NCBI RefSeq assembly: GCF_000150275.1
Contig: NW_002060948.1
Span: forward strand, 5,914,659-5,978,658
Reading direction: 5' to 3'
DNA length: 64,000 bases
Source: Trichoplax adhaerens
Lineage: Eukaryota > Animalia > Placozoa
In this document: positions 28,501 to 63,529 of the stretch, one piece after another
How positions within the stretch are numbered: the stretch's first letter is position 1
Layout of the letters: every line of letters begins with the position of its first letter
Program-made: the position numbers and the translations under genes
Notes under the pieces: model-generated
Databases searched by the model: none
The model's input: only the letters and a program-made list of their open reading frames with translations
What the model was told of the DNA's origin: nothing

Positions 28501-29475
28501 TGGCTTAGCAACGTTAATTGCAAGGGCTACGAATCTTCTCTCTCAGATTGTGCTCATTTAGGATGGGGTGTTCATTTCGACTGCTTCGATGTTACACTAA
28601 CATGTTACAATGGTATGTAAATTTCATTTTCTCATACATTGTTAGCTCCTGTACAATAAAGAGTGCCAGTATATAATTAACCTAATATTAAGAAAGACTT
28701 AGCTTATATATAAAATGCTTGTTGTTTGATCATCATATTTTCGGGATATACTCGCAATATATTCATAATTTGCAGTATTTTTCCTCATCAAAATGATAGC
28801 ATACGAAATGAATGACTTTAAAATATTTTTCACAGATACATTAATGCTGGCTATATAGAATTTAAGTCTGAATAGTTGATTCTCTCAGTCTTTCCTTTAA
28901 ATCGATTGTACAACTCTACTCCTCTAGAACTTGTAGTAAATCTTCTTGATTTTAAAATAAGAGTGTATGAAGAATTTACCGAATATCTCATTTTACCTAC
29001 TGTTAGTGATAGTAAAATATTATCCACTACTAGTAATGGCTATTAATTTTCTTCATAAACTCTACCCACGTTTTACTTTATTATCAGGTTTACAATTGAA
29101 TTTAATCTAATTTGGTATTATGTTGCACTGACATTATTTTAATAGAAACTGAACTTGAAAGCGCTATACAAATCCGTCTTGAAAACACACATGGGTTAAA
29201 TTCAACAGGACTAGTCCAAATTCTGTACAATGGAAAGTGGGGCTCGGTATGCAGCCAGAATTTTGATTACACTGATGCAAGTGTTATCTGCCGACATCTT
29301 GGATTTTCGAAACCTATCGCATATGGTCCAGGATATGGAAAAGGGAATGGAACCATCTGGCTTAACAATATCAGATGCAATGGTTATGAATCATCAATAA
29401 CAGCATGTAATCACGATGACTGGGGAGTTCACGATTGCAAGCATGACGAAGATATCGGAATAACGTGTTTTGACA
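25578..29475 (+). CDS. Secreted/extracellular EGF-SRCR-SRCR (scavenger receptor cysteine-rich) protein; 3' end uncertain
   Basis: Exons 25578-25607 and 26901-26943 give a signal peptide (MHCLLIYFILIAIFQSTILVVGTS). Exon 27427-27537 is EGF-like (DYCALRPCQNNGTC...CSCRSSYYGTRC). A 15-nt microexon lies at 27741-27755. SRCR exons at 28304-28612 and 29146-29475 show WGSxC, VxCxxLG, IWLxNxxCxGxESSxxxC and WGxHxC. Exon phases are compatible. Confidence 0.88.
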
Positions 29476-29958
29476 GTAAGTCATAAAAAACGTTATATTT
29501 TTTTCTTCAATCCCAAGTTTGTCATTATTTGTTTATATTTGGTAGTATAGTTATATTATATCAATTTACTTTAGACATTTTGAGTATTTGTGATGTTTAA
29601 TGGCACCATTGTGATTTAATATCAACTTGACTTCTTATATTTTTATTAATGAAAGTGGATAGAAGGTTCTAAACTCAATTCGTATTAATATGTGAACATA
29701 GTCATATTATGAACATTTATTATAAGACGAATAGGTTTAGTATCCTGTAATAAAACCTGTTCTACTGACTGTAATTAAAATGTAGTTGAAACAAGTAATT
29801 TTAAGAATAGCAGATTTTATTACTGGTTCTCTATCGATTGAGATACTACGTACAAAATAGTACAACAAGCTCTGACAGACAAAGAAACTTCCTACAACAG
29901 CAGATCTTAGAAAAGAATGACTAAGAGCAACAATGACAGAAAAGCGTAGCTACTTAAA

Positions 29959-37225: not shown

Positions 37226-39791
37226 GTGAGCGATACTCTATCGTTATTTTATATTTTAGTTATTGCTTTTTAACATATAAAATTATTGTATAAGCAAGAT
37301 CTAAGTATCTTGTTTAGCTTATTAGTAGTGCTCGATAAAAGTTACCGTAGTGGTATTAACAAAACGATATGAAAAACAGCACATCTTTTAAGGATCTGTA
37401 ATAATAAGTCCTATGAAAGTACCGTATAAGATTACTTTGGACTCAATTTCACTGTACAATCTTTTAGTTATGATAATCTTTAATTAACATGCAATGTAGA
37501 AAAAGATCCAACTTCAGTATGCCTGGTTGTATCTAATTACAAAATCATTTTCGATGAAGGCATTCAGTAAATGACAAGCAGAATTCTACTTTGAGCTCAC
37601 GTAATTTATAGAGGAAAATACCTTTAATTTTAATGACAAATAAACGGGTAAAAGGACTACGATAAAAGCAAGATATGAGTATAAACATTGAAATTAAAAG
37701 TATTAATACAAGAGAGCACCAATACTGCCGTGGCAAATCAAACTATCAAAAATTACAAACTCGAATCACTCACAATCACCGAAGGAAAGGAGTATTCCGT
37801 ATCATTTGAAATTCTTAATAACTTCTTGACTTCTCTCCTTCTAAACCACTAAATTGCATTCCTTTTTCATACTAATCTGCGTCATTGTATTTGTCTAACT
37901 TCGAAGTCATAATTTTATTCTACTGTTTAAGCATTTCTAGTTCTATTATTGCAACTAATCACACAAGCTTAGATAGAATTTATCTTATCATTCTCTTCTA
38001 CATGAAGCTGGAAAACTTATCATGTATTAATTTCTGTTGATACTTTTAACGTATGCGATACTATATTAACCGAATGGACACATTTCCAAACGGCTAAATT
38101 AAAAGAAACAGCTTTGAATACCAACTTAAGTTAACTTTAGCGGAAAACCCAATTTATTGTAACTGTTAATAATAATCTTACAAAATTACTTAAAAGAATT
38201 AGAGAAGGACAGAGCTACTGCCTTCATCAATCAAACTATCAAGAAAATGCGAGATTACTTATGATTTTAGGTATATCCTGACCTTTACCTTCTTCACTAC
38301 ACGTCATCGCTTTTACACTACTAAACAACGCTACCTTCCATAAGCTATACAGAATAGTTTGTGGTAACAAGCTATTAACTTATCACTCTAAAGTATTCTA
38401 AATAAAACTAGCAATTAATTACTGTAGTGATAGCCGATAAAACACTACTCTGGATTCCTGAAATTACTACATTAACTACGCCATACGGAATATATCTATA
38501 AAAATATACCAAGACAGGCCCGATAATCTTAAATATGAACGCAGATCAGAACGTTCGGGTTCTTATTGTGTTCTATCGTGAAGTAAAATAAGTTCTGCTG
38601 TATTTATAATCAAATTAGCTATATGCGTATGTTGTTGTGTATCATAACTAAAGCACTCATGAAATGCCAACTAAATAAAACTTAAATTACAATCTAACAT
38701 CGTATAATTCTTAACAAAATAATGTTACCGAATATTCTTAAATTCTTGCCAGAATGAAGTAGTCGGGTTCACAATATACTAAAAATACTAAGTAATATCT
38801 AGTGTAACCAAACAAATAAGTTAATATTTAAGCTACAGTGCTTATTACAATACAAAAACTAGAAAGAGAATCCTAAACCCAACTTTCATTACATACTATA
38901 AGATAACATTTATTGCATTAGTAAACTAAATTAGCCACAGTTATAAACGCTACCGTATGTTATAATACCTATCACTAACCGTCGATTTCGTAAAGACAAA
39001 AATTACTTGTACAATACAATTTTATGAAGAAGAATTCTAGTTATTAACTTTCATTATAATTAGACAGTGAATTAACGAGTAGCTCGATTTTCAATTAAAG
39101 ATGAAATAGAACAAGTTGCTAGCATTATCTGTATCTATAACATATAGTTAGAAAAATCTGTCCATGATTGTCAAGGAAATATCGGCCTAGAGACTTAGTG
39201 GTAAAAAGATACATAGGCACTAGCTAATTGCTAGTAGATGTGAAATCTACCATTAAAAGCGTGCATAAGACCTTGCAATTGGAAATTTAAATGCAATCCT
39301 AAAATTGGTATGGCCAATACTGTAGCTGCTATAGTCTATCAGCTATCGTTTTTTTCTTCTACATACAATTTCTACCTATAGGCGAAATGTTGTCAACTAA
39401 TAAAGTTCCGGTATCTTGCCGTCAATGAAAATAATTGCTTTCTTGTTCCATCTTCACGTAGATTATCGTAATCATTTACGAAACGCTCTTGCGTTGAAAC
39501 TCTTAATGGTTTCGTACCATGAAATAAAATACTATACGCTTATGGTTGGAATATACCATTAAGAATTGAATGCGCACGAATTAGTGAGTCTTTCAGAAGA
39601 ATTTTAAAATTTGAACATCAATAAAATTGGATAGTCCATATCTTAATGTCGCTAACTTTGCATACGAGTTCTTTAACAAATTACAGTAAGTTTTCATCAA
39701 AGAGTTATTTCGATTGATTATATTTGCAGTTATCGCTAGTGGAATATTAGACTTTCAATTATTATAAAAATGATTTGCTTCTTTTTCTTTA

Positions 39792-42700
39792 TTAAGTCGA
39801 GAAATCATTCACAATTCTATCATGACCGTTAGTTTCGTCACCTGAACCATTACTTTCCTGTCCTTCATCTATCAATTTCTTTCTTTTATTAACGATGTAA
39901 TGAAGTACATCTGTATGCACCTCTTGGGATTCCCCGGAATTTAATTTTTCCTCAACTTGATTTAGACAGTCATTTAAAGCCTGGTTTTGCTTTTTAATCT
40001 TATCAAGTTTCTTTTGTAACTCTCTCAACTGAGTTTTCTGTCGGTCCACTTTCTTCATTAATTGAGTATCACTTCTCTCTGCATCCTCTCTACTCGCTCT
40101 TGTGGTACATTGACGTTGCAATTCAATATCCGGTATTTGAAGAGACTTAAAAATTGGTATCAAATCTTCTGGTATCAAAATTCGGCTACACCTTCTTAGG
40201 AAGGCAATCATCTCTGAATTGAGTTTAGGTAGAGATGGATAAATTGCAGTATAAAAAGTCACTAAATCATGTCCTCTCATTTTTAATATTACTTTAGGAT
40301 AAGACAAGGTACTAGTAATACCATTCCCGAAAGACACATTTTCTGTTGATTTTATCAGCTCATAAACGTCGTGTGAATCCTCTCTCTTCTTGAAAAGATC
40401 ATTTCTGTTACTCCTTAATTTATCGATAGACTTGACAATTTTTCGGGCATAAACGATTAGCTCTTTTAGGACATCATTGCATTTTGTACTCTCACGGATT
40501 TTCTTCGCATATTCTACTAGCTTCCCTTTATTACAAACAACTTTACAGGTTTCCTCGAAATCTTTCATTATCAATTCTTTATTTGATACTCCTGTCTCAT
40601 TTTCAAGATCTTCATGCAGTAATACCAAGTTTTCAAGACACTCTTTAAATTTCTTTTGGATTTTGATGAATTCTTCTATCGCATCAACTAGCTTTTTGGT
40701 TATAACGTTGATAATTTCTTGCAATACTTTGGCCAAATCAGCAGTGTCTCCTTTGCCGAAAAATCCAGATAAACAATCAGGATGTTTTGTTGCAGAAAGA
40801 TTATGATTTATTTCCTTTTGGATTTCTTCTCCTTTCTTGCGGTCTCTCAAATAATAATATATATAAATTGGATCATAAAGATAGTTTTCTATACTATATC
40901 TCCTTAAGCATTGAATATTATATAATTGGGGATCTTCTTGATTGTCGTTATCAACTAGCCCAAATACAAATTCCCTTAAACTCTGATCTTCATCTTCCTC
41001 ATTGACACAACATTTCACAATATTTTCCACTAAAGCTCGACATGAATTCTCAATCATCTTACTGCCACTTTTATCTGAAGGGTCTTGCCTTTTTTTCTGC
41101 CTGCTAGCAGACATGAACAGCAACGGATAATCATTCGCGATTAAGCGTTCACTAGTTAATTTGTCTTGAATCATTTGGTAAAATATTCTATCATCAGTAG
41201 CTTCAACGAAGACGATTCGAAAAGGTAAATTGACATGGACAAATTCTGCAGTTAATAATTGTATTGCTTACCGCTTACTAGCAGCCTTTTCAATTTTGGC
41301 CTCTTTGGTTATATTATCTTCTGACAGGATATAGACACTGCCTTCGGGTGCAAGACTGACTGTTGTAGGGGAATGAGTAGTCATAATAACCTGAATACCA
41401 AGCTTGGATATCAATTTAGATTTAATCGTTTCAATGATGTCTTTAACTAAACTTGGGTGAAGATGGGCATCCGGTTCATCGAGTAAAATGATTCCGCTAA
41501 CATTGGTTTTTGCCAAATTCTTACTTCCGAATAGCCACAACAACGATAACAGTTCTAACCGTTCGGCGGGAGATAGTTGAACTTGAAAAACAGGTATGCT
41601 GAAAGGTACTCTTTTTTGGCATATTAATTCCTCATTCTCAATTATATTTATATCATACTTAAATCTATTTTTATGTAAATGTCTATTGACATCGTAAAGC
41701 GTGTTATCCATTTGCAAAAAATAGCGTATGTAGTCTTTCCATGAACCGTAGGTCTTGATTAGTTGTCCAATTTCCTCCCTTAAATACTGTGCTAGCTTTT
41801 CTTGAAGTTTACTTTCAATTTCTGCTGTATTCGTCAATCCTAATTTCATCGTAGCATCGCAGACCTTGTCTATGATTTTTCGATAAAGTTCTTCATGGTT
41901 AGAACATTCCATCTGATATCTTTCACCTAGAATACGGCGCTTTGTTATGTCCTCTAATGTTTTATTAAAATTTTGTTCAAAATCATCGGATACTCGCGTA
42001 ACTGCCTTTATAGTGGGATTCTTGTTGTCGCCTTTTTGATCATGAATGGAATTGGGAGCGAAGCTTTTCTCCTCAGAGTTAGAACTGAGGTAACAGATTT
42101 GCGAAACGTTTCTTCGGTATGACAAGGTTGGACGAACTGATGATTTATTGGATCTAATTCTTCGTCTTGATATCATGGAAATGATTCCATTTAAATGATT
42201 AAATTCTGTAAGCATTGATTGCGTACTTGCTAGCAGTGATGTATCTAAATCGGTGATGTCGAAATTTTTACTTTTTGACCCTTGTAGTATAGCTTCTAGA
42301 ATTGCTGTTTTACCGCTACCGTTTTTACCGGTAATAACAGCTAACATAGGAATATTACGCCAACAGAATGATTTACCCAGATTTTTAACTCTATAATTGT
42401 CAAACTGTATTTTAACTAAATAGCCTGGCTTTCCACATTCTGTATCTAACCCATCTTCGTATTGGATTTCTATTTCTTCTCGATGCTTACGTTCAATCTC
42501 TGCCATCAATTCCTCATTCGACATTTTTTCGGCTTCTTGCATGATAACTTTTACTGCTACTATTAACCATGTACCGAGATTTTTACCACTTTCCTGTGAT
42601 AGCTTTATTGAAAGGTTATTAACCCTCTCTAGTTCTAAATAAGATATTACGGCGCCAAGTTTATTTTTATCTCGGCCCTGTGGATCAAAAAAGAATGTTA

Positions 42701-43658
42701 TAAAATTCTCTGAAGAATCTTTCTTAACTATCCTTTTAATCAACAATATAGCTCAATGGGTCTTTTCAAATTTGATGGGTAGAATGGTAAAACGGACATT
42801 ACTTCTCTGTGATAGCGTTACTAATTTCTTCATATTGCTAGAATGATTTTCAATGGAAATATCTGAACTCGTCAAAGAGATGGAATCATCTTCAAATTGA
42901 AAATCTGCTGCGGACATTATATCTTTTAGTGCGCTATCGATGTGATCACTCGTATCTAAAGGCCTAGGATTATCTTTTATGTTAATATCCATTACTGGTA
43001 AGATATCATCTTGTTGATCATCGATATTTCATTTTGTATATAGCAAATATCCAATGTTATCAATGTCTAGCCGGTAGTTCATTTCATTTTCACTTGCCCT
43101 GTCCTCAGCTTGTATGCATTCTTCATCATGAATTTCTTCTCTGGTCGGCTCTAGTTCCTTCTTGTCATTAGCCTTACCACTTACAGTAATGGCTTTGATA
43201 CATTGTTCCATCTCCGCTGTCACATGAGTAAGTAATAATGGTGATTTCGGTGGCATATCTATGAATTTTGTACAGTCATAAACAATAATCACTGCTTCCA
43301 TAATGGCTGTTATTGATGCTGGAGTCCATGTTTGATCAGATTTTTAGTCTTCCATATTGACTGATAATCTAACCAGATTATATGAATGGAAAAGTTCGCT
43401 AAGGATACTTTGGAGAAGACCGAAATCTGTTTCTATGATGTCCTCATCACGACCTTGATCTCCTTCACGCGAGTGAATTGCATAGACATAGATCGATTCC
43501 TCTGATCCATTTTGAAGTATCGCCATTGAAATACTATCCCTTGCATTAGTAAGTAAAGGCATAATAATAAAATGTTTGCTCAAGTTTAAATTTTCTATAT
43601 GTAATCTATGGTATTTTATTCATTTCTTAAATTCTGAAGGGTTTTCAAGGTTAGAATA
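39792..43658 (-). pseudogene. Intronless ABC-type ATPase + TOPRIM (DUF4435/OLD-type) nuclease fusion with a long N-terminal extension; one reading frame with five in-frame stops
   Basis: ORFs 43344-43583, 43029-43301, 42753-42992, 41268-42746 and 39792-41174 are all in one frame. Motifs: Walker A ITGKNGSGKT, signature LSPAER, Walker B/D-loop ILLDEPDAHLHP, H-loop MTTHSP. After TAA 41268-70 come IVFVEATDD (TOPRIM Glu), GLVDND (DxD), RYSIENYL, RGHDL and a C-terminal coiled coil. Confidence 0.88.
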
Positions 43659-44655
43659 TTTTTGGCAGTTACAATTGCTAAAATTAATATTTACATGGCA
43701 ATATAGACCATTATATTACTGGCCAAGATAGGATGAATCCCTGCTGCATATATTAAAATTTTCTTGTTAATTGGATATTCGTAGACTGTTTTATCTGGAT
43801 TGATATGTATGCGAACTATACGCTATTATTGTTTTATATTTCAGTTATTGCTTTTTAACTTACAAAATTATTGTATAAGCATGATCTAAGTATCTTATTT
43901 AGCTTACTAGTGCTCAATAATAGTTACCATGGTAGTGTCACTAAAACGATAGGAAAAATAATAAGTCTTCAAGTCTTCGTCCTTTGTATCTACAATATGT
44001 CTGTAATAATCTGCCCTATGAAAGTACAGTATAGAATTACTTTGGATTCAAATTTACTTTACAATATTTTAGTCATGATTAGCTTTAATTAACATACAAG
44101 GCAGTAAATGAGCCACCCTCAACATGCCTAGATAAATAAACTACAAATTATTTCTGGTGTAGGCATCCAATAAATGACAAGCAGAATTCCAGTTCACTAC
44201 AATTGAGACCTTTATATCAGAAATATTGAGAAAATTTTTTAATTTACTACAACTGTAGCAGTACTGATTTGAACGCGCTTAATTTATTGGAGGAAATACC
44301 TTTAATCTTCATCTATAAACGGGTATATGGACTGCGATGAAAGCATGTTATAAGTATAACCATTAGAATTTAAGGTATTAATTAATACGAAGAGACTATC
44401 AAATAGTGCTGTAGCCAATCAAACTATCAAAATTACAAATTCAAATTACCCACAATCACTGAAGGAAGGAGCATTCCGTAAGAACTAAATTTCTTAACAA
44501 TTTCTTTGACTTTTCTCCAAGCTACTAAATTGCATTCCTTTATCATGCTATCAACTTATTACTCTAAAAGTATTCCAAATAAAAGTAGCAATTAATTACT
44601 ATAGTGATAGCTGATAAAATACTACTCTAGATTTCCGAAATTACTATATTAACTC
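43659..44655. repeat. Patchwork duplicate of 36424-38475 (lacks the solo LTR and about 500 bp)
   Basis: Collinear matches to 36424-36582, 37226-37870 and 38375-38475, e.g. TTGGCAGTT..AATTGCTAAAATT, AAATGACAAGCAGAATTC and GCAATTAATTACT.TAGTGATAGC. Confidence 0.85.
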
Positions 44656-44659
44656 GTAG

Positions 44660-45600
44660 CCCACCCAATAGGTCTTTTCAAGTTTAATGGTTTGAATGAT
44701 AAACGGTTACTACTTATGGATGATGGTGCCCTTAATCTCTTCTCTGTGTTAAAATGATTTTTAAAAACATCTGAACTCTTCGAAGAGCTGGAATCACCTT
44801 CATATTTAAAATCCGCTATAGATACCAAACCTTTTCTTGGATTATCGATGTGATCATTTGTGCACCTAAAGGCCTACGATTATCCTTCACGTTAACACCC
44901 ATTGCTGGTAAGATATCTTCTAACTGATTATCGACACTGCTGTATATAGCAAATATCCAATGCTATTACTATCTAGACGATAGTGCATTTCATTTTTACT
45001 TGCCGTGTTCTTAGCTTCTATGAATTCTTTGTCATGAATTTCGTCTCTACTTGACTTTTGCTCCTTCTTACTATTAGCCTCACCATTTGCATTGATGACT
45101 TTGATACATTGTTTATCTTCAATTTCATATAAAGAATTAATATTTGTGATTTTGTCGGTATTTCTACGAATTATTTGCGTCAGCTGCAATAATTACTGCT
45201 AGCGTAATAGTAGAAGCTGGCGCTGAAGTCCATATTTCATTGATTTTCTAGCTTTCATATTGACTGATAACCTAACCAGATCACACGAATGAAAGACTCT
45301 CTAAGGATAGAATGGAATCGATCGAAATCTATTTTTATGGTATCCTTATCATAATCTTGATTTTCTCTGTACAAATGAACCATATAGGCATAGATCGATT
45401 CCTGTGAGCCATTTTAAAATATCGCCATTGAAATACGATGCCTAACATTAGAATCCATTTCAAGAATCCATTTCGACTTTATTTAATCTTGACAGAGATT
45501 ACGACTTCATTTTTGTAGGCCCAACCCCTTCTTTGTTATTAATAACCGCAATTAAAATTACGTCATATAGACTTTAACATGTTAAAGCGTAAAAGTAATT
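44660..45600 (-). pseudogene. Second, decayed copy of the N-terminal region of the ATPase-TOPRIM gene
   Basis: KQCIKVINANGEANSKKE...ASKNEMHYRLDSNSIGYLLYT aligns with 43029-43301. It contains frameshifts and an internal deletion, and is truncated before the ATPase. Confidence 0.85.
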
Positions 45601-47579
45601 TATTTGATTAAACATTAACAATGCATGACTATCGAAACTAAGTGACTGGCCTACTTGTTCATTCGTTCAACAACAACGAGATAATGCGTCTTTAGATTTC
45701 AAGACATCAATTAGCTAATTTAGTAAAAATATAGAAATCAAACACGGTTTACTTGTTTATATTTCTCTCGTATAATTAAACCGCATTTGCCGCCACGTTA
45801 TACTTTAATTAGACAGTACAAGATAACTACCAGTAATTACAAAAATTGAAATAAATTACTAGCGAAGCATAACTAGCCAGTAGCCTGTTAGTGATTATGG
45901 TTAGGAAGAAATTCTATAAGATAGGGGGCGTTTTCTCGTTCATGCCTTTAACTAAGAATAGCTCGTGGCTGATCTCAGTATTCATGACAATGGGAAAATT
46001 TTATAGCTTATTACAATTTAGTTCTTACAAATCCCACGCAAGAAATTATCAGGGATAGCTTATTACCGATTATACGTGATTTATTTATGATCCGAAATAG
46101 AGTTCTTAGCGTAATATGCTACTAAAGATATATGCATCAATTTCTTGTCGTTTAGTATTGAATATGGCGGCGCTGAGATACCTCAACTATCGGACTATCT
46201 AAGATAATTGCTATAAGGAATTAAAAACTAGTTTAGTAATATTAGGTTAACTAGTCATACTGCTTTGTTCACTACCTTATAACGTATGACGCAATCAAAT
46301 ATTATGGATATCGCAATACACGTAGCTTTATGAATTCCAGATAGTCCATGAATAGCGAAAAGTAAATTATGACTTAGCTGCTATTTTGCTCGATATTTAC
46401 AATATATCATAAACTACAATAAGGATAATTATTGGAGACGAAATATCATTTACTTGAATACGTTAATTGGTGTTACTGCTCTACGTTGCTTAAACTATAG
46501 AGTTTAAGAAAATAGTCTTGCTCATAGTGTTTCAGTGTTAAGTATAGGAAATGCCATGACTTGTTGCACTTTTAACGGTAGGAATTAATGTGCTCTAGTA
46601 AATCAATATCACTCTTGTTAATTCGAAAATTAAAGCTATGAACGTTATTTGTAATGTGATTGTCACAAATTTTCTTCTTTGTGAATGGTTCACTCCTCTA
46701 GTAACTAATATCCTAATGCACTCTAACAGTGAGACAGATACTAGCCGCTAAGGCTTCGTGATAGCGTTCATAATTTAGAGAAGATTATTTTCATAAATAA
46801 TTTATCCTTACATCTAATTACTTCATTAAAATGTATCTTGTATTTCTCTATTTAGTAAAACGTTCATTTATGAGTGCATTTATTGGTTTTAATCAGTTGA
46901 TTTTGCCAGTTGATTGGTAGTGAGTGGTGAGTTCACCAAATAAAGCTGTTTTGTAGGCTGTAGTACAGCGTATCTATTGATTGTGAGCCTTTTAGAATGG
47001 CACAGTAGTTCTTAGGCGTTGTAGTAACTGTTACATATTCTTACTAGATCTTTCGACAGATTAAGGTAATAATCTGTACAAGCAACTCAAAGTAAGTGCT
47101 TTATGTTAGACGAGTGAACTTGTCAGGAAGTAGCCTGTGACACATAACCCAAAATCTGATTGGTAGAGTCTTTGAAGTAAAGATATAATTTACTTGTAGC
47201 CTTTTGCATCATTATGCACCGGCAATATAGGATACGATTATCAAAAGAATCACAGTAAGGTTAACTTTATCGATACAAACACAATTTATTTCATTATCAC
47301 CGAATCCAGAATGTAAATACTAAGTACCGATTAAGATCAGTAGTATGGAAGGAATTAGAATTAAACACTTCAAAGTTTCATTCTACCGTTACTTTATCAA
47401 AACTGCCTAGTAGAATATTCCTTAATATAAAAGTCGCCATGTAAAAATCAGCTAGGGATCTACGTGTATTAGGGCCTATTGCTTATTTTAGCAAAGATTA
47501 CACCTTCTGGACATTATTAATTCCAATTTTGTGAGTATTACCACTAGGTTAATTGTAATGACTATAGTCGGGTTAATAA

Positions 47580-50500
47580 CTAATTATAATTGACAGAAGG
47601 CACTTGCGCTGGATTTCTGACGTATCCAGTTGCTGCTACAGCATCTTCTTGCAAAGGTACCTACAAGTTAATATAATCAATTCGAATATAGTTAGAAATA
47701 GATGACTAAATATGACTGAAAGAAAGTTAGCTATAAAATTGTTGATTTACCGGCATGGTTGAAAGGTTGGTGTATCTATTGTTTAACAATTTCCTTGGCA
47801 CCTTGCAAAAGATAACCGCACCATGTATGCAATAGTAAAAGAAGAAAATGTAAACTGCAGTAGCCAAGGCAGTACCAGCATAAGCTATGGCTGTGACTGC
47901 TTGAGCAGCCTGACCAATACTTAGGCCATTTTGAAATTGATGGACGATTGTAGCAGTCATCCCAACCAATGATATGATCGTCATGACCAGTCCACCAATA
48001 GAGGCAAGTGCACTGATGATAGAAAACACTAGGTGCGCTATAGCCTATTATTAAAAACATTATAGTATCGTTTTTGATTAAGTTATTGATAGTAAAATAG
48101 ACGAATGCGAAAGGAATCATACATAGGTGTATAGTATTAATAAATGTTGACTAAAACTTGAAACAGTCGCATTTCTATTACAAACTGTTGTTCATGTTAT
48201 TTATTTTGTGACAGTATGGTACATTGAATTTATACCAAAAATTTAACAGTTTTGAATATTTAATCCAATTATCATATGTTAGAATTATACTCAATCATTG
48301 GTATGAATGTAATAGTTATTACTACTGGAAAGTTAATGAAGTAAAGCTTTAAAGAGGAAAGTTAACTGAATTTAAATAAATGTACATAAACAAAAGTTGA
48401 GAGGATAAATGGACTAAGTATTTTTCATAGATCTACGGTATACGATCAAACTTCAAAGTGAGAAATGTAACCTTTGCTATAATTTTAACTCGTTCATTTA
48501 TGTAAGATAGAGTAATCGATCTACTAAATAATTTATTTATCAGCAAATAAATGTAATTTACGTTGATTTAGCTAACAATTTAGTGCTATTTAATTTTATT
48601 AAGAAATTGACTAGTGCATAATGAAATACTTTCGTTGAGGATCTTACACTTCATGATGATGAAAAGGTGGCCAATTGAATAATTTATTCACTACACAGAT
48701 GACTGTATTTCAAATTGATTTCACTTTTTTTCTTTGGGTAATCATATTTCATTTATTTCGTAATCATTACTAGTATGTAGATAGAACATGAAATTTATAT
48801 CTTACTATATTACTACTACCGATAGATCGTTTTAGACTTTACTATAAATAAAAGAACATTGAACTTTAGAAACAAGCAATCGATTATTTAATGACAGTAA
48901 GAATTATATAAGGTGAAATTCATTTAATTTAAATTTATTCCGTGCACTTGCATAGCAAAATTTTACTGACAATAATATAAAGTATTGTCCTAAAAGGGCA
49001 AAAATAGCTTTGCTCACCACTTCATGACGATATAGTCCTTTCCTGTATGCACAGATGCCCAAGATACTGGTGATTAATATCTACATTATGTAAAGATTAA
49101 CATGATAAAATTGAGTTCTATATGATAAACTATTTTATTTCCAGTTAAGATATTTTTCAAGTTTTATTTATATTATTAAGGCTAGTCAATTTTCACTAAG
49201 TTGTAGTGAATCAAGAACAAATTGACTCATGGAGGACTACTGAAGAAAAATGTAAGGACTCAAGTCAATCATAAACTCCCCGATGTTGAAAGAATAAAAG
49301 CAGAAAACGCTTATAGAAATGAAAAATTTTTGACCACATTAACGAATAAATTGATCGTCGGGTTAGGAATATTTTAATACTAGCTATAGACCAACACGAT
49401 GTCGAGAAATTATAAATTTATAACGAACATTTCAACAAATATATTGGCGAACATAACAGTTGATCTCTTGATACTGATCGGTAAGCCTTGGACTTGATCG
49501 CTTCCAACTCAGTAAAATATTTTAAAGAAAATCTTTTCTGGCATATGTAAAGTTAAGCCTATTGAATATAGAACTATATGATGAACGAATGAATGTCAAC
49601 GAAGGTTGTTAAAATGCCAAAGAAAAAGTTCTCTCATGGTAAGATACAGATTAATATTTTATATAATTATATAATTATATAGTGATTTATCAGTCGCAAG
49701 TTGACTTTAATTCATACTGGAGCACTCGTTGTTTAAAGGCAACTTATATTTTCATATTTTAAAATGTTACAAGTAGCTGAAGCCCCTGGCTATAGAAGAA
49801 ATAACTAATTTTGTATTGACTAGAAATTGAAAGCTTGGGATATCGTTCAACCATTACTTTATTTTATGTTTTAGCACTCGCTTTGTAAGGGTAATTTTAC
49901 TTTACTTGTTTATTCATTTTGTACGTCCTAATAATTAAAATTTCAACTTGATGTAAAACAATAAAAGTTATTATTACAAAGATTATTGATTTTAGCCGTC
50001 AAGAACTATTAATTCTTTTCGAAGTATAAAAGCGAACCGGATTATTCTTCATACAACATGTGAGTCAGTAATTATGACATTAGAGTGTGCGATAGATTTA
50101 TATATTAAGAAAATAGTGAATATCTAAATGAGAAGTTTTATAACATCGCAGAAAGTATAGAGAGTGGCTGATTTAAGATCGAATGAGTAGTTGAGTACTC
50201 GATAGATGAACTCTTTTGATGGGTGTCGTAATTGATATTAAAGAAGACAATACAGTAGAGGGATCCAATTAGCGCGGTAATTTTCCTAACATCAATCAAA
50301 GTCAAATTATTTTGTTGTTTTTAATACTCAAAAAAAACATTCTTTACAAACTCATCTTTTATCCTGTTTTGATCAATCAACCAAAAATCAATTACTGTAA
50401 AAGTGTCTTCAATAATTGAGTTTAGACCGAGGACCAAAAATGGAGTGATCTATGTCTATATTTCTGCATTTTACAATGCCTCTGTCGAGATACCAACAGT

Positions 50501-56676: not shown

Positions 56677-57049
56677 GTTAGTGTAAAATAGCTTGCTTAA
56701 CTACGAAGATATTTCCTGACTTTGTTTTTATTCAATATTTCTCTTTATGCTATGGAATATTTCATAATTACAGCAAAACAGCATGTGAAACTGTGCATGT
56801 ACAGTATTCGTTCGTTAGCCAGAGATGATACACTTAATTATTCTTGTTTCATGAAATGTGCTCATATTGGTAAGTGCAGGAACTAAAAATATATTTTCTT
56901 TATATCTATCTAGCTGCCACGAAACCGCGTAATGTTATTTATTTAACAAATTAATTGTTTATTCTCTCCACAAAGGAAAGTAAATTTATTATGCTGCGAT
57001 TTTTAGGTCATATTTAGGCCCCAGTCATTCTGGAGTTAGTTCCTTGAGC

Positions 57050-57920
57050 CGAATTCAGATCCAGATCACTTGAATGGAAGAACTCTGTAAGGATACGTTG
57101 GAGACGATCGAAATCTGTTTTTATGATATCGTCATCACGATCTTGATTTCCTTTACGCGAATAAATCGTACATGCATAGATCGATTCTTGTGAACTATTT
57201 CGAAACATTGCCATTGAAATACGATTCCTTGCATTAGTACGTACAGACAAAATAATGAAATATTTATTCAGGTTTGAAGTTTCTATACGTAATTTATAGC
57301 ATTTTGTTCGTTTCTTCAATAACAAAGCATTTTTAAGGTCAGTAGTTGGCAAGATTCTGTTCGTGTTTTATTCTTCATAATTTGAAAAAAATTGTAATTC
57401 TTAATTGATGAGCTAGGAGAGAATTGACAAACTCTCTCTCATTGTTGCGCTTTCGAGGTCATCTTGATTATTCATCATGCTTATTTAGATTCATTCATTT
57501 ATACTGTCTCTATAATTTTCTCGTCTCAATACAGATGTAACTAGCATGGCTTGAATGGAATCTGTTATCCATGTTTCACAAGTGCCGGAGTACTTGGTTG
57601 TAAATGAATGGATTTCCTTGAATTGAAGTAAATAAACCCCAATTTTCCCCCTTTCAACGCTGTGATTGATTCTTTTATTTTACTAAATAAATTTTTGCAC
57701 TGCTGATCATTGTAGAGGTCGAATACTTGAGCGGGATAAGCATGATCTATTTTATCACGAAAATGTTTACTGTTCAATCGGGATAATATTTTATCTCTTC
57801 AAGAATCCATTTCGACCTGATTTAATCTTGACAGAGTTTACGAGTTCATTCTTATAGGCCCTACCCCTTCTTTATTATTAATAATTCCAACTGAAATTAC
57901 CTCATATAGACTTCAACATA
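57050..57920 (-). pseudogene. Third decayed copy of the ATPase-TOPRIM gene N-terminus, extending further 5'
   Basis: KYFIILSVRTNARNRISMAMFRNSSQESIY...DDDIIKTDF aligns with 43344-43583. The upstream 57790-57920 matches 45460-45580. Confidence 0.85.
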
Positions 57921-60900
57921 TTAAAACGTAAAAGTAGTTAATTAGATTGAACATAATGATGGATGACTATCGAAACTAAGTGGCCTGCCTACTCGTTCAA
58001 TTGTTCGATAATAACGAGATAATAGGCTTCAAGACATCAATCAACTAATTTAGTGAAAATGTAAAAATTAAACACAGTTTACTTGTTAATGTTTCTCTGG
58101 CGTAATTAAGCAGAATTTTTGTTGTCATATCATGTTATAATTATAGGAGTACAGTAGCTATGTAACAGAAAATTAATTAATTATTAACCGTGTGTCGGAG
58201 TATAGAGGCTAGATTGCTGAGTTTCTAAATTGTATCAATAAATAAAGCTGTGCGATAATTGGTGTAATGCTAGCGCGGCATCAAGAACTAATATACAAAT
58301 TTCACTGAATAAAGTGCAAGATAACTACCAGCACTTACGAAAATAAAAGTAAATCACCAGCGAAGCATAACTAGCTGATAGTCAGTTAGTGATTACAGTT
58401 AGAAAGAGATTCTATAAGATAGGGGCGTTTTCTCGTTCATGCCTATAATTTAGAATATCTCGTGTTGATCTCAGTATCCTTGAAAATTGGAAAATTTTAT
58501 AAATTGTACCGATTTAGTCCTTGCAAATCCCATGTAAAACTTACCAGGGATAGCTTAATGCAGGTTATACGTGATTTATTTATGATCCGATATAGTGTTC
58601 TTAGCGGAACAAGCTATTAAAGATACAGTATATGCATCAACTTCTTGCCGTTTAGTATTGAATATGACGGCGTAGAGATACCTTACAAGGTACTTAAACT
58701 ATCAGATTGTCTGAGATAGTTGCTGTGAATATTTATAACCAGTTTAGCAGGCTTAGATTAACTAGTCATTTTACTTTATTCACTACCATATAACACTTGA
58801 TGCAATTAAATACTACGAATATAGCGGTATACGCGAACCCTTTATGAATTCCTGATAGTCCAGAACGCGCGGTCAGTATATCACAACTTAGCTGCTGTTA
58901 ACGCTCGACATTCGCAATAGATCATCAATGACAATAAGGATAATTTATTGAGACGGAATGTCATTTACTTGAGTATTTTGATTATAGATATCGCATAACT
59001 TAAAATCTAATTGGCAGAGTTTTTGAAGCAAAGACATAATTTGCTTGTCACCTTTATTATTTGCATTGGCAATACGATTATCATAAGAATCATAGTAAGG
59101 TTAACATTCCCGATTTAGAACACAATTTATTTCACTATTACCTAACCCGAAATCCAAATACTAAGTAAAAGTCAGTATTATGAAAGAAATTACTAGAATG
59201 AATTACTTCAAGGTTTCAATGTACCATTACTGTATATCTTCTTGAGCAAAATGGACTTGTCTTATATATATAATCTGCACGCATACACCACCAATAATTG
59301 CATATCTAAACTGCTGAGTAGTATATCTCTTGATATAAGAGTCACAATGTATCAATTGGACAGACCACTACGCTTTTTTATTTCAGCAAAGTTTACACTT
59401 TCTGAATATTACTACTAGGTTGATAGTAATTACTATAATCGGGTTGGTAATTGTAATTGGCTGTAGACACTGTCGCTGGATTTCCGACGTATCCAGTTAC
59501 TACAGCATCTTGTTGCAAAGGTACCTACAAGTTAGTATAATAAATTCGAATATAGTTAGAAATAGATAACTAAATATGACTAAAAGAAAGTTAGCAATAA
59601 AATTGTTGATTTACCGGCATGGTTGAAAGATTGGTAGCATTACTGATAAAAGCTTTCCTTGGCACTTTGCGAAATATAACCGCACCATGTATGCAATAGT
59701 AAAAGAAGAAAATGTAAATCGCAACGGTGATGCTAGTACCAACATAAGCTATTACTGTAGGCGCTTGAGCAACCTGACCAATAGTTTGGCCATTTTGAAC
59801 TTGATTGGCGATTGAAACAGTCATTACAGCCAATGTTATGATTGTAAAAACCAGCCCTCCAACAGTGGTAATTGCACTGATGATCGAAAAGACGAGATGT
59901 GCTATAGCCTATCATCGACAGCATTATAGTTGTTGATGGTAAAATAGAAGAATGCGAAAGGAATCATAGGTATATAGTATTACTATATGTTGATTAAAAC
60001 TTGAAACAGTCACATTTTTATTGAATACTGTTGTTCACATTATTTATATTGCAACGGTATGGTAAGTTTAATTTATACCTAAAATTTAATAGTTTGAATA
60101 TGTAATCCAATTTAACCATTATTCTTATGCTACAATTATACTCCCATCATTGCTATGGATTAGTCGTTATTACGAGTGGAAAATTATTAATCCAGCAACA
60201 ACTTTAAAAGGTGGAAGTTGGGTAAATGAAAATTTTGTACAAAGATATGAAAATTGGGCGGAGAAATGGACTAGAAGTATTTTTCGTAGATCTACTGTGA
60301 ATGATGACATTTCAAAGTGAGTAATGTAAACGTAAAACCTTTGCTATAACTTTAGCCCCTTCATTTATGTAAGACGGAGTAATGGGTCTACTAAGTCATT
60401 TGTTTACCAAGCAAATAAACGTATTTATACTTGATTTCGCTTACAACTTAGGGCTGTTTAATTTTAGTCGGAAACTGACTGGTACTAATGAAATTCTTTC
60501 GTTAAGGATCGTACACTACATGATCATGAAATGATAGTCCAGTAAATCATTTATTCACGGCATAGACGACTGTTTTTAAAATTGGTTTCACATTTCTCTT
60601 TAGGCAAATCACATTGCACTTATTTCATAACTATTAACAGTATGCAAATAATACATGAAATTAATATGTTACTATATTACTACTGCTTCAGTTAAATAGT
60701 TGTAGACTTTACTATTAGTAAATAACATTGAACTTTAAAAATAAGCAGTCGATTATTTAATGACAGTAAGAATTGTATAAAGAAAAATTCATTTAATATA
60801 TAATTATTCCGTGCGTTTGTATAGCAAAAATTTAACTGACAAGAACATATATTAGTAGCCTAAAAGGGCAAAAATAGCCTTGCTTACCACATTATGACGA

Positions 60901-62170
60901 TATTGGCCTTTCCTGTATCCGCAGATGCCCAAGATACTGGTGATTAATATCTACATTATATCAAAATTAAAACGACAAAATTGAGTTCTATATGATAAAC
61001 TACTTTTATTTCCAGTTCAAATACATTTCAAGTTTTCCTTGTATGTAATACAGTCTACAGAATAACTTGAGATACGATTGCAAGATCGAGTAAGAATAGT
61101 TTAATTTCTGTGTAAGTACTGTAAGTTATGCTATAGTGCTATACGCATTGATAATGTACGCAAGCCTTCTTTACAGGCAACGAGATGTAAAGAGATTAGT
61201 GGACAACTTGAATTACTGCAAAACCGTCTTAAAATCGATGGCAAGCTAGAAAAGGATGTAAAGCGACTTTATTTTTCCTATTAAGGCTGGTTGATTTTCA
61301 CTAAGTGCTAGTGAATGATGACCAAGTTGATTGGTCAGGGACTACTGAAGAAAAATGTAAGGATTCAAGCCAATCGTAAACTCTCGGATATTTCCAGAAT
61401 AAAAAGCAGAAAATGCTGACAGAAATGTAAGCGTTTTAACTACATTAACGAATCAATTGATTGTCAGCGTTCGGAATATTTTAATACTAGCTATAGACTA
61501 ATATGATGTAGAGTTCTAACGAACATTTTCACAAACGCATTGACGAACATAATAGTTCCTGACTGAATACTGTTTGGTAAGTCTTTGACTTGATCGCTTC
61601 CGACTGGGCAAAAACTTGAAAGAAAATGTTTTATTGGAATATGTAAGGTTAAACTCATTGAATGTAGAATTGTTTAATGGACGAGTCGTAAGACACAGAC
61701 TATGAAGCAATTTATCAGTCGCTACTTTACTTTCATTGGTAGTGGAAGACTCGTTGTTTCAAGATATGCTACGGTGTTTATTTTATTCTTTGGTGTAATC
61801 ATCTCAATGTTGAGGCTTGTATACTGCTTGTGGACAAGTAGAACATGTTGCAAAAAAAAATTCAACATACCGGAACGGTTACCCAATAGCAATTCAAGGC
61901 GGCGAGCAAGCCAATCGCGAAGATGGTGACATATGGAACAAACAATCCCATTATTCCAACAACCAGAAGAACGGAAGAAAGTACAAGAGAAGCAATGGAT
62001 AAATTGCTCACTACCATCAAGGTACGCATTAGTCCCGTATTGGCACTATTCAGCATATTGGGATCGAAATTGGCCATTTTGTGGCGTAAATAAGATTTTC
62101 CTTTTTCCTGTCTTCTCAACTCTATCAAGATGAAGATGAAAGTAATTAAGAAGAGTACTTAATCAATATC
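57060..62170. repeat. Segmental duplication paralogous to about 45260-51900 (ATPase-TOPRIM N-terminus plus MS4A-like gene)
   Basis: Collinear intronic and intergenic similarity with indels: 45810-46460 to 58312-58975, 47155-49160 to 59010-61035, and 49172-49740 to 61278-61760. Confidence 0.9.
59393..62077 (-). CDS. MS4A/CD20-like four-transmembrane protein, copy 3 (4 exons, 231 aa, intact)
   Basis: Phase-0 exons at 62077-61871, 60950-60888, 59908-59615 and 59524-59393. There are four hydrophobic segments and a Tyr-rich tail (NYNYQPDYSNYYQP). Confidence 0.78.
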
Positions 62171-62640: not shown

Positions 62641-63397
62641 GGGTATATGCTAGCTTTTATTATTAATAATAATATTATTAGTAACATACCTAGTAGTCCT
62701 ATTGAGTAATGAATGATGGCCAATCATGGCAGATATCCTTGCACGAGCTGGCATCAGCAATATCAACGTTGTGCATGGCAACCAATAGCACCTTATAGTT
62801 GAGAGTCTGATGATCATTGCCGTCGATTGGATAGCGTTCGCTTTCTAACCAAAGATGATGAGCGCCATGCTAATATTAGAGGATTCATGAATGGGTATAT
62901 GCTAGTTTTTATTATTAATTAATAATACTATTAGTAACATACCTAGTAGTCCTATTGAGTAATGAATGATGGCCAATCATGGCAGATATCCTTGTACGAG
63001 TTGGCATCAGCAATATCAACGTTGTGCATGGCAACCAATAGCACCTTATAGTTGAGAGTCTGATGATCATTGCCGTCGATTGGATAGCGTTCGCTTTCTA
63101 ACCAAAGATGATGAGCGCCATGCTAATATTAGAGGATTCATGAATGGGTATATGCTAGTTTTTATTATTAATTAATAATATTATTAGTAACATACCTAGT
63201 AGTCCTATTGAGTAATGAATGATGGCCAATCATGGCAGATATCCTTGTACGAGCTGGCATCAGCAATATCAACGTCGTGCATGGCAACCAATAGCACCTT
63301 ATAGTTGAGAGTCTGATGATCATTGCCGTCGATTGGATAGCGTTCGCTTTCTAACCAAAGATGATGAGCGCCATGCTAATATTAGAGGATTCATGAA
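62641..63397 (+). repeat. About 253-bp tandem repeat, three near-identical copies
   Basis: GGGTATATGCTAG begins units at 62641, 62893 and 63146. Confidence 0.95.
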
Positions 63398-63529
63398 TTC
63401 CTCTATTTGAAACGGCCGATGACAAGATCGATGTGACTGGATTAGCAACATGTCCAACACGTTACAGTGTTGGAAATGGAATACAAGTGTAGTAATATTT
63501 GAAGCAGATTGGTTGGAACGGTAAAAGAC

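Follow-up and report, generated by a model that had tools for sequence, protein, structure and literature searches.

The window analysed here, a stretch of 64,000 nucleotides at the end of a 5,978,658-nt scaffold of the Trichoplax adhaerens genome, contains on its minus strand the locus TRIADDRAFT_57780, annotated as a protein of 1014 aa. When window positions 39700-44300 were translated, all eight of the ABC-ATPase and TOPRIM motifs were found to share a single minus-strand frame, which spans from 43583 down to the terminal TAA at 39792-94. An initial annotation of this DNA had proposed a complete ATPase motif set and TOPRIM-like motifs in one frame, and both the frame and the coordinates were borne out. 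It had also pointed to a Glu motif missed by the track of open reading frames (ORFs). Translation through a TAA at 41268-70 indeed continues the frame into this motif, which falls between the TAA and the first ATG (41174) of the downstream ORF. The interval proposed for the gene, 39792-42746, was right in frame but not in extent, the frame being open upstream to 43583 through three more stops and the terminal exon reaching from about 39674 to 43538 according to RNA contigs. The locus is made up as follows.

39674..43538, minus strand: terminal exon with a protease-like remnant, the ABC ATPase, the TOPRIM domain, a coiled-coil tail and a 3′ untranslated region of ~120 nt (RNA-seq contigs)
42552..43061, minus strand: what is left of a single CE-clan (Ulp1/RickCE-like) protease unit (aligned by eye with those of an intact paralog)
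41271..42749, minus strand: ABC ATPase piece, AriA-like (Pfam, PADLOC, motif coordinates)
42306-42329, minus strand: Walker A, GKNGSGKT (translation, as for the motifs that follow)
41559-41576, minus strand: signature, LSPAER
41454-41486, minus strand: Walker B and D-loop, LLDEPDAHLHP
41367-41381, minus strand: H-loop, TTHSP
40107..41267, minus strand: AriB-like (DUF4435-type) TOPRIM nuclease domain, 387 aa (AF2 model, structure and profile matches)
41190-41216, minus strand: Glu motif, IVFVEATDD
40941-40961, minus strand: GLVDNDN
40869-40901, minus strand: RYSIENYLYDP
40263-40280, minus strand: MRGHDL
39795..40106, minus strand: C-terminal tail, coiled-coil and low-complexity, followed by the stop TAA 39792-94 (translation)

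Long ORFs are almost confined to this locus, the rest of the 64-kb window being ORF-poor and, given also the ATPase scores, the signal is more than chance. The GC content is 0.27-0.44 across the window, mostly 0.28-0.36, and 0.33-0.36 in the gene. A similar coiled-coil tail is present in a family copy on scaffold C1414 and, among bacteria, in the closest relatives P0006, P0007 and P0009.

The ATPase half has the attributes of an AriA-type ATPase, namely Walker A, signature, Walker B, D-loop, H-loop and a helical insertion. The piece matched AAA_21 (E 1.8e-19) and AAA_15 (1e-14) in Pfam, while PADLOC gave AriA at 9.5e-21, a second AriA model at 2e-16 and AriAB at 8.7e-19, ranking AriA and AriAB above GajA. 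Among PDB sequences, the AriA chains 8ux9_B and 8v45_A were matched at values near 6e-13. For the intact paralog, which lies on another scaffold and is described below, a 784-aa ATPase-TOPRIM module was modelled with a predicted local distance difference test score (pLDDT) of 85.9; the long helical insertion occupies about residues 106-230 of this module, between Walker A and the signature.

The C-terminal piece of the window copy gave an AlphaFold (AF2) model with a pLDDT of 87.8 and a predicted template modelling score of 0.88. The first two Foldseek matches were the AriB chains 8ux9_A and 8v46_D from cryo-electron microscopy entries of PARIS (E 0.013, probability 0.98). VIA-align placed residues 12-377 of the model on residues 16-308 of 8ux9_A with a Z score of 10.0 and a root-mean-square deviation of 5.0 over 206 residues, and reached Z 9.7 with 8v46_D. 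C-terminal regions of OLD from Burkholderia and Xanthomonas also aligned over the whole domain, with Z of 6.1 and 5.6. All other high rows covered only a helical bundle (residues about 194-299 in these alignments) of ~125 residues that is inserted in the nuclease domain at about residues 175-300. The structure comparison proposed by the initial annotation thus has AriB as the best match over the whole C-terminal domain. Five acidic residues of the TOPRIM domain, E22 (41202-04), D26 (41190-92), D106 (40950-52), D108 (40944-46) and E127 (40887-89), are invariant or nearly so in the family. By the offset of the structural alignment and the register of hhalign they parallel E26, D30, D88, E90 and E122, the two-metal TOPRIM residues of AriB (PMC11464382).

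Profile searches point in the same direction. A profile of four Trichoplax C-terminal domains found 384 relatives among 1.84 billion proteins, and in almost all of these the domain comes directly after an AAA_21 ATPase. Many of the ~580-aa bacterial relatives have borderline DUF4435 matches at the place of the domain (25-27 bits, with a cut-off of 27), and a relative consisting of the C-terminal part only matches the AriB half of the PADLOC AriAB model at 2e-12. Run on the genome, the AriAB model crosses the TAA of the window copy into the Glu motif (model positions 331-454, E 2e-16), and its positions 485-625 match window 40536-40982, the region of the DxD and YSIENY motifs, with E 0.006. DUF4435 is a rare domain, seen in 1 of 151 genomes of cyanobacteria and in 4 of 401 from Bacteroidota, and five proteins above the Pfam cut-off served as its reference. 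With the window piece as its first row, the family alignment matched these five proteins in hhalign at 96.3% probability (E 1.5e-9) over the catalytic core, pairing VFVE with F-EG-DD, GLVDxD with IDRD and RYSIENY with YSIEN. One of the five references comes from a PARIS-like two-gene pair on the Anabaena azotica chromosome (L112:1357-3609), where a 447-aa AriA-like ATPase stands immediately before a 302-aa DUF4435 protein (176 bits).

Direct searches carried less of this signal. The C-terminal piece alone, run with hmmscan against Pfam, NCBIfam and PADLOC, gave coiled-coil noise and no nuclease match. Family profiles searched against PDB sequences found no AriB or OLD chain, the best match being a non-significant one of 23 residues to PH0156, and hhalign against a single DUF4435 protein reached 3%, which is too weak. 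The protein is a fused ATPase-TOPRIM of the OLD/PARIS superfamily, with a nuclease closer to AriB than to OLD. This architecture had been proposed from the outset, and the PADLOC matches, AriB as best whole-domain structure and the DUF4435 profile at 96% agree with it; the DUF4435 assignment in particular holds at the level of the family profile and not at that of single-sequence searches with the Pfam DUF4435 and OLD-TOPRIM models.

Could the family nevertheless consist of DNA nucleases of the OLD/GajA type, which nick or degrade DNA, instead of RNA nucleases of the PARIS type? Among the alternatives this one survives best, and we regard it as unlikely but deserving of some weight. For the 784-aa module taken as a whole, Foldseek ranks 6P74, the OLD nuclease of Thermus scotoductus, first (4.6e-9), then retron Eco8, GajA complexes and PtuA, and the OLD C-terminal regions do align over the whole nuclease domain. 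There is also a faint OLD-like_TOPRIM match in a chlamydial relative (E 0.008), and a preprint of August 2026 files the eukaryotic genes as OLD-like (10.64898/2026.08.18.745644). However, with the nuclease domain the scores of AriB are well above those of OLD (Z of 10.0 and 9.7 against about 6), the PADLOC ranking favours AriA and AriAB over GajA, the bacterial kin match DUF4435 and not OLD-TOPRIM, and PF20469, the OLD-like_TOPRIM model, is without a match in the genome. The OLD-fold match is a mark of membership in the wider superfamily and not of a class 1 or class 2 OLD protein.

The window copy is interrupted by four in-frame stops. For comparison, contig C1235 is 97.9% identical to window 42464-43654 (blastn), the two sequences diverging beyond 43654, and has Trp, Cys and Trp codons opposite the three upstream stops.

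41268..41270, minus strand: TAA separating the ATPase from the TOPRIM Glu motif (translation); unchanged in the contigs of all four runs
42753..42755, minus strand: in-frame TGA at a conserved Trp codon; TGG in C1235 and in RNA contigs of runs X7 and X12 (42753 T>C)
43029..43031, minus strand: in-frame TGA; Cys in C1235, and TGC in run X7 (43029 T>G)
43344..43346, minus strand: in-frame TAA; Trp in C1235

Run X7 has, alongside the sense codons at two of the stops, a 1-nt insertion (an extra A) behind 43233. The disabling changes thus differ between strains or haplotypes: those upstream are polymorphic, and the central TAA at 41268-70 is shared. A variant genetic code was considered and rejected, since the stops mix TAA and TGA. 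The gene models TRIADDRAFT_57780 and TrispH2_011645, its ortholog in Trichoplax sp. H2, exist only by means of small predicted introns over the stops. The H2 model reads '...IEKAATTDDRIFYQ...', skipping both the TAA stop and the TOPRIM glutamate motif, and the RNA contigs contain no splice at the position of the model-predicted intron over the TAA. The deposited models of the locus in both Trichoplax assemblies are artefacts, whose stop-skipping introns delete the catalytic glutamate. Because of the four in-frame stops and of these models in T. adhaerens and T. sp. H2, the window copy is most likely a pseudogene that was inactivated not long ago and continues to be transcribed. As judged from its sequence it cannot make the nuclease: translation would end upstream, and anyway before the TOPRIM glutamate. 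The idea of an intact gene at this place thus has to be abandoned, the intact member lying on another scaffold. Between paralogs the ratio of nonsynonymous to synonymous substitution rates (dN/dS) is 0.25-0.45, so the family has evolved under constraint.

Transcription of the locus was followed with Logan contigs from public runs mapped to window 39201-45100. The stretch is present in 20 public runs from 5 studies, three of these runs being RNA-seq on record. Gap-free RNA contigs extend over 39674-44214 in run X12 and 39672-43440 in run X8. Because RNA depth in both runs falls to zero below about 39600, the 3′ end of the transcript can be placed ~120 nt past the stop codon, which argues against plain DNA carry-over. 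Seven joints with CT..AC ends, i.e. GT..AG on the minus strand, were found in runs X7, X8 and X12 upstream of the ORF, and the transcript thus has spliced 5′ exons.

43538/43694, 43743/43908, 44014/44097, 44207/44298, 44331/44450, 44563/44665 and 44743/44831, minus strand: splice joints (RNA contigs)
43694-43743, 43908-44014, 44097-44207, 44298-44331, 44450-44563 and 44665-44743, minus strand: small exons of the spliced 5′ leader (RNA contigs)
44831, minus strand: start of a further leader exon, the leader in total covering 43694..44831 (RNA contigs)

When each of the six small exons is translated singly, no frame is open in three of them, and for this reason the leader looks non-coding. The terminal exon of ~3.9 kb follows behind these spliced exons, and its coding part is intronless. 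Unspliced contigs were deeper than spliced ones, and the contigs give neither strand nor expression level.

A window copy that still functions would require the stops to be assembly errors, to be read through, or to split the gene into a separate ATPase and nuclease in the two-gene manner of AriA/AriB, and we consider this distinctly improbable. It would agree with the lack of any frameshift in about 3.8 kb, with transcription in three RNA-seq runs, with the sense codons that replace two upstream stops in other haplotypes or strains, and with a dN/dS of 0.45 between the C-terminal half and the C1414 paralog. Against this, the TAA at 41268-70 does not vary among the four runs and is also skipped by the H2 model, which makes a one-off error untenable, and the mixture of TAA and TGA rules out a simple change of code. 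The first ATG after the TAA (41174) is downstream of the catalytic Glu (41202-04). Furthermore, the protease unit has lost its Cys, run X7 has the 1-nt insertion, and recent changes are mostly nonsynonymous (13 against 2 synonymous between the window and C1235, which are small numbers).

The search for paralogs, likewise suggested by the initial annotation, was carried out in six frames and found an intact member and, on C1412 and C1414, broken ones. A 1484-aa ORF at C1412:844466-848920, TRIADDRAFT_54103 (TrispH2_011415 in H2), is the intact paralog. About 4 kb from it lies a second copy, TRIADDRAFT_54102, which is without protease repeats and has a TAA between the N-terminal part of the ATPase and the remainder; a third copy at C1412:833.8-836.2 kb is heavily decayed, with many stops. 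The region C1412:833800-848920 (L017, L019 and L021) can be described as a tandem cluster of three copies in differing states, and a 240-nt TOPRIM fragment is found between the copies (L021 9158-9397). The C1414 copy, TRIADDRAFT_51463, is without the Walker A region and 65-71% identical to the window copy, and the small contigs C1235 and C919 hold N-terminal parts only. The family thus comprises at least five loci and two fragment contigs, and birth-and-death turnover is the simplest reading of its condition.

In the intact paralog four N-terminal protease-like units precede the AAA_21 ATPase and the C-terminal domain. The protein matched Peptidase_C48 (Ulp1) at 1.4e-21 in three stretches and RickCE_cat at 1.5e-10. 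By eye, and on sequence only, units 3 and 4 keep a His-Asp-Cys triad and units 1 and 2 do not. The unit of the window copy has a recognisable His (KTH) and Asp (FFFDPQ), but the Trp codon after the His is now TGA and a Leu occupies the position of the catalytic Cys (GKNLGTW). A search for the protease repeats in bacterial proteins returned only Trichoplax itself and one weak 866-aa match, and no Ulp1/RickCE-like repeats occur in the sampled bacterial kin. Further copies of the N-terminal unit lie elsewhere in the window.

44664..45451, minus strand: extra copy of the N-terminal unit, diverged (74%) (blastn of C1235 against the window; direct repeats D3 and D6)
57061..57846, minus strand: extra copy of the N-terminal unit, diverged (76-79%), within a roughly 12-kb duplicated block (blastn; ORF 57014-57352)

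These copies account for part of the duplications that the initial annotation had described as shared with spliced host genes: the duplicates exist, but where examined they are diverged copies of the gene's own N-terminal protease-like unit. Other repeats and open stretches were also seen in the window. A ~4-kb block is duplicated ~12 kb apart (45291-49588 and 57077-61684, 74-87% identity) and includes fragments of N-terminal units. Near the scaffold end, 62667-63425 consists of three tandem copies of a 253-nt unit that are 91-99% identical. An open, exon-like stretch at 29112-29486 on the plus strand has a translation that is SRCR-like by eye and would fit nearby host genes of immune type.

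The nearest non-placozoan proteins, P0006 and P0007 (816 aa), are 34-46% identical and are encoded in ordinary bacterial contigs, with flagellar genes, hfq, hflKC, glyQS and thiamine genes as neighbours; one of them adjoins a large ankyrin-repeat protein. Three more relatives have bacterial neighbours. A pattern scan of the genomes of 185,579 species found the family in Bacteroidota, Verrucomicrobiota, Cyanobacteriota and Pseudomonadota, the best match being a gammaproteobacterial metagenome-assembled genome at 44%. A maximum-likelihood tree of 106 rows was made by quick search, with SH-aLRT (a likelihood-ratio test of branches) as the only support measure and with several metagenomic rows of unchecked origin. 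Within a bacterial subfamily of 28 rows (100), the five placozoan rows group together as a single clade (100), with P0006 as sister (88). This nesting, the multi-megabase scaffolds, the H2 assembly and the GT-AG 5′ exons uphold the bacterial origin and true integration that had been suspected from the start, and they fit one bacterial transfer followed by duplication and decay within placozoans. The named members of the closest subfamily are Candidatus Protochlamydia, Parachlamydia and Gammaproteobacteria, and the donor was plausibly an intracellular bacterium. Proteins of this subfamily (P0029, P0159, P0026, P0160 and P0161) have N-terminal F-box-like domains, as in Ca. Protochlamydia, or LRR domains, and one member is named an OTU-domain protein by UniRef. 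F-box, LRR and OTU domains are eukaryote-type domains typical of the effectors of intracellular bacteria, and here they are joined to an ATPase-nuclease of defence type.

Vertical inheritance from an early eukaryotic or archaeal ancestor, with loss almost everywhere else, is very improbable. The August 2026 preprint groups 'all examined Metazoa' with homologs from Promethearchaeota (10.64898/2026.08.18.745644), and the rotifer Adineta steineri has a related gene. Yet the placozoan clade sits within a well-supported bacterial subfamily, its nearest rows come from bacterial contigs and the coding part is intronless; the tree has no other animal sequence within the 28-row subfamily, where the origin of several metagenomic rows is unchecked. 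The rotifer protein (P0042, 465 aa, on a 90.6-kb contig) belongs to the same broad family by profile (E 8e-16) and probably represents a separate transfer.

A mis-join of symbiont or contaminant DNA into the Trichoplax assembly can be dismissed with little hesitation. In its favour are the bacterial relatives (many of them from intracellular bacteria), a GC content like theirs, and the rickettsial endosymbiont that Trichoplax hosts, whose DNA is present in the genome project according to a 2013 survey (PMC3641634). Against it, family copies are found within scaffolds of 6.0, 9.7 and 13.3 Mb and have orthologs in T. sp. H2, which was assembled separately; GT-AG introns connect the ORF with upstream exons in RNA contigs, whose coverage ends some 120 nt beyond the stop codon; tandem duplication and decay are seen in the family; identity to the closest protein from bacteria is no more than 36-44%; and the stretch recurs in 20 runs from 5 studies. 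From the multi-megabase scaffolds, the H2 assembly and the spliced exons joined to the transcript, contamination is excluded for practical purposes, and the chimeric join that the initial annotation had named as a possible objection is contradicted.

Taken together, we read TRIADDRAFT_57780, with a probability of about three in four, as a transcribed pseudogene of a small placozoan family derived from one bacterial gene that encoded a single-chain, AriAB-type PARIS-like module. Several points weigh against this reading. The Pfam models for DUF4435 (PF14491) and OLD-like_TOPRIM (PF20469) find no match up to E 10 in the six-frame genome, and a profile made from the four Trichoplax rows only is weak against DUF4435 (21%), so that the DUF4435 link needs bacterial intermediates and the fold. 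The Foldseek E value for AriB is just 0.013. Pseudogene status is read from contigs, which drop rare variants, and an allele without the TAA is possible; the upstream stops are polymorphic, with sense codons in C1235, X7 and X12. Four stops with zero frameshifts in 3.8 kb and steady transcription leave some room for a residual role. Finally, the substrate and the trigger assigned to any eukaryotic member are pure analogy.

In the proposed scheme the ancestral protein would have combined, in one chain, an ABC ATPase bearing a helical insertion and a TOPRIM nuclease of DUF4435 type with an inserted helical bundle and, in some copies, a coiled-coil tail; in placozoans this module follows CE-clan protease units that resemble Ulp1 and RickCE. 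If PARIS is a guide (PMC11464382), the ATPase of the intact paralog may hold the nuclease inactive, and binding of a foreign protein would release or activate it. The two-metal TOPRIM site might then cut tRNA, or possibly DNA as in OLD/GajA, and the cell would be arrested. The protease-like units may serve in sensing or targeting, and may sense or mimic what is targeted by pathogen effectors acting on ubiquitin-like modifiers. We tentatively raise the further possibility that the intact paralog TRIADDRAFT_54103/TrispH2_011415 is a working PARIS-type innate-immune sensor-nuclease of an animal, acquired from a bacterium living inside cells. Recognition of a viral or bacterial protein by its ATPase would set the TOPRIM tRNase free, its Ulp1/RickCE-like repeats would serve as decoys or sensors for pathogen effectors acting on ubiquitin or SUMO, and the broken copies, the window copy included, would be relics of a birth-and-death process of the kind usual in immune gene clusters; this remains the less probable side of the question.

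Animals are known to have acquired and retained only a small number of anti-phage modules from bacteria. The placozoan family is a clear case of animal uptake of a fused AriA/AriB-type ATPase-nuclease, with a bacterial donor whose closest kin in the sampling are inhabitants of eukaryotic cells. It has gained a spliced leader and, before or after the transfer, a protease-repeat N-terminus, has expanded, and is now in partial decay. The main interest of the finding lies in the intact paralog, a candidate abortive-infection-like immune effector in one of the simplest animals. In addition, the F-box- and LRR-fused chlamydial and gammaproteobacterial relatives raise the question of whether the subfamily acts on eukaryotic hosts instead of, or besides, phages.

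The family is not entirely new to the record. UniRef names TRIADDRAFT_54102 an 'Endonuclease GajA/Old nuclease/RecF-like AAA domain-containing protein', and the August 2026 preprint (10.64898/2026.08.18.745644) describes OLD-like ATPase-TOPRIM genes without introns in aquatic eukaryotes, Placozoa and Rotifera among them. It files them under class 1 OLD/GajA with GajA-based models, favours archaeal ancestry for the metazoan genes, and makes no mention of PARIS, DUF4435, protease fusion or pseudogene copies. The placozoan entry of the preprint is probably the TRIADDRAFT_57780 family, because PF20469 finds no other OLD-type candidate in the genome. In the passages searched, the family goes unnamed in the 2013 survey, which dealt with bacterial genes of the Trichoplax project (PMC3641634); the words 'Ulp1' and 'ATPase' are absent from its main text, and the 12 candidate transfers on large scaffolds given there are other genes. 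The proposal of an undescribed animal family therefore stands only in part, while the assignment to the PARIS type (AriB/DUF4435), the donor subfamily, one of intracellular-bacterial proteins, the protease-repeat fusion, the spliced leader, and the broken locus with its models appear to be new.

Among known systems, Septu PtuA and retron-associated PtuA, which work with an HNH protein (PtuB) and have no TOPRIM, do not fit: their models match only the ATPase motifs, whereas the Trichoplax C-terminal domain is TOPRIM-like and not HNH. OLD of class 1 and class 2 (6P74 and Burkholderia pseudomallei 6NK8) and Gabija GajA share the order of ATPase and then TOPRIM in one chain. 6P74 is the best whole-module Foldseek match, and C-terminal regions align over the whole domain with Z about 6. 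Likeness in structure and profile is however weaker than to AriB, and PF20469 is without a match. PARIS differs in that the Trichoplax gene resides in an animal genome with spliced leader exons and has a bundle of ~125 residues inserted in the nuclease, a coiled-coil tail in some copies and, in the intact paralog, four N-terminal CE-clan protease-like units; Pfam DUF4435 also lacks a direct match to the Trichoplax domain, and the window copy is broken. In common with PARIS are an AAA_15/AAA_21-type ATPase with a helical insertion, AriB as the best full-length nuclease match, the equivalence of the five TOPRIM acidic residues, and AriA/AriAB as top PADLOC matches. The arrangement of AriA and AriB in a single polypeptide also exists in some bacterial PARIS systems (PMC11464382). 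Closest of all is the bacterial fused ATPase-TOPRIM subfamily. Many of its members have an N-terminal F-box or LRR, and Ulp1/RickCE-like repeats occur in no sampled member, but it contains the nearest relatives (36-46% identity), which share the core and often the coiled-coil tail.

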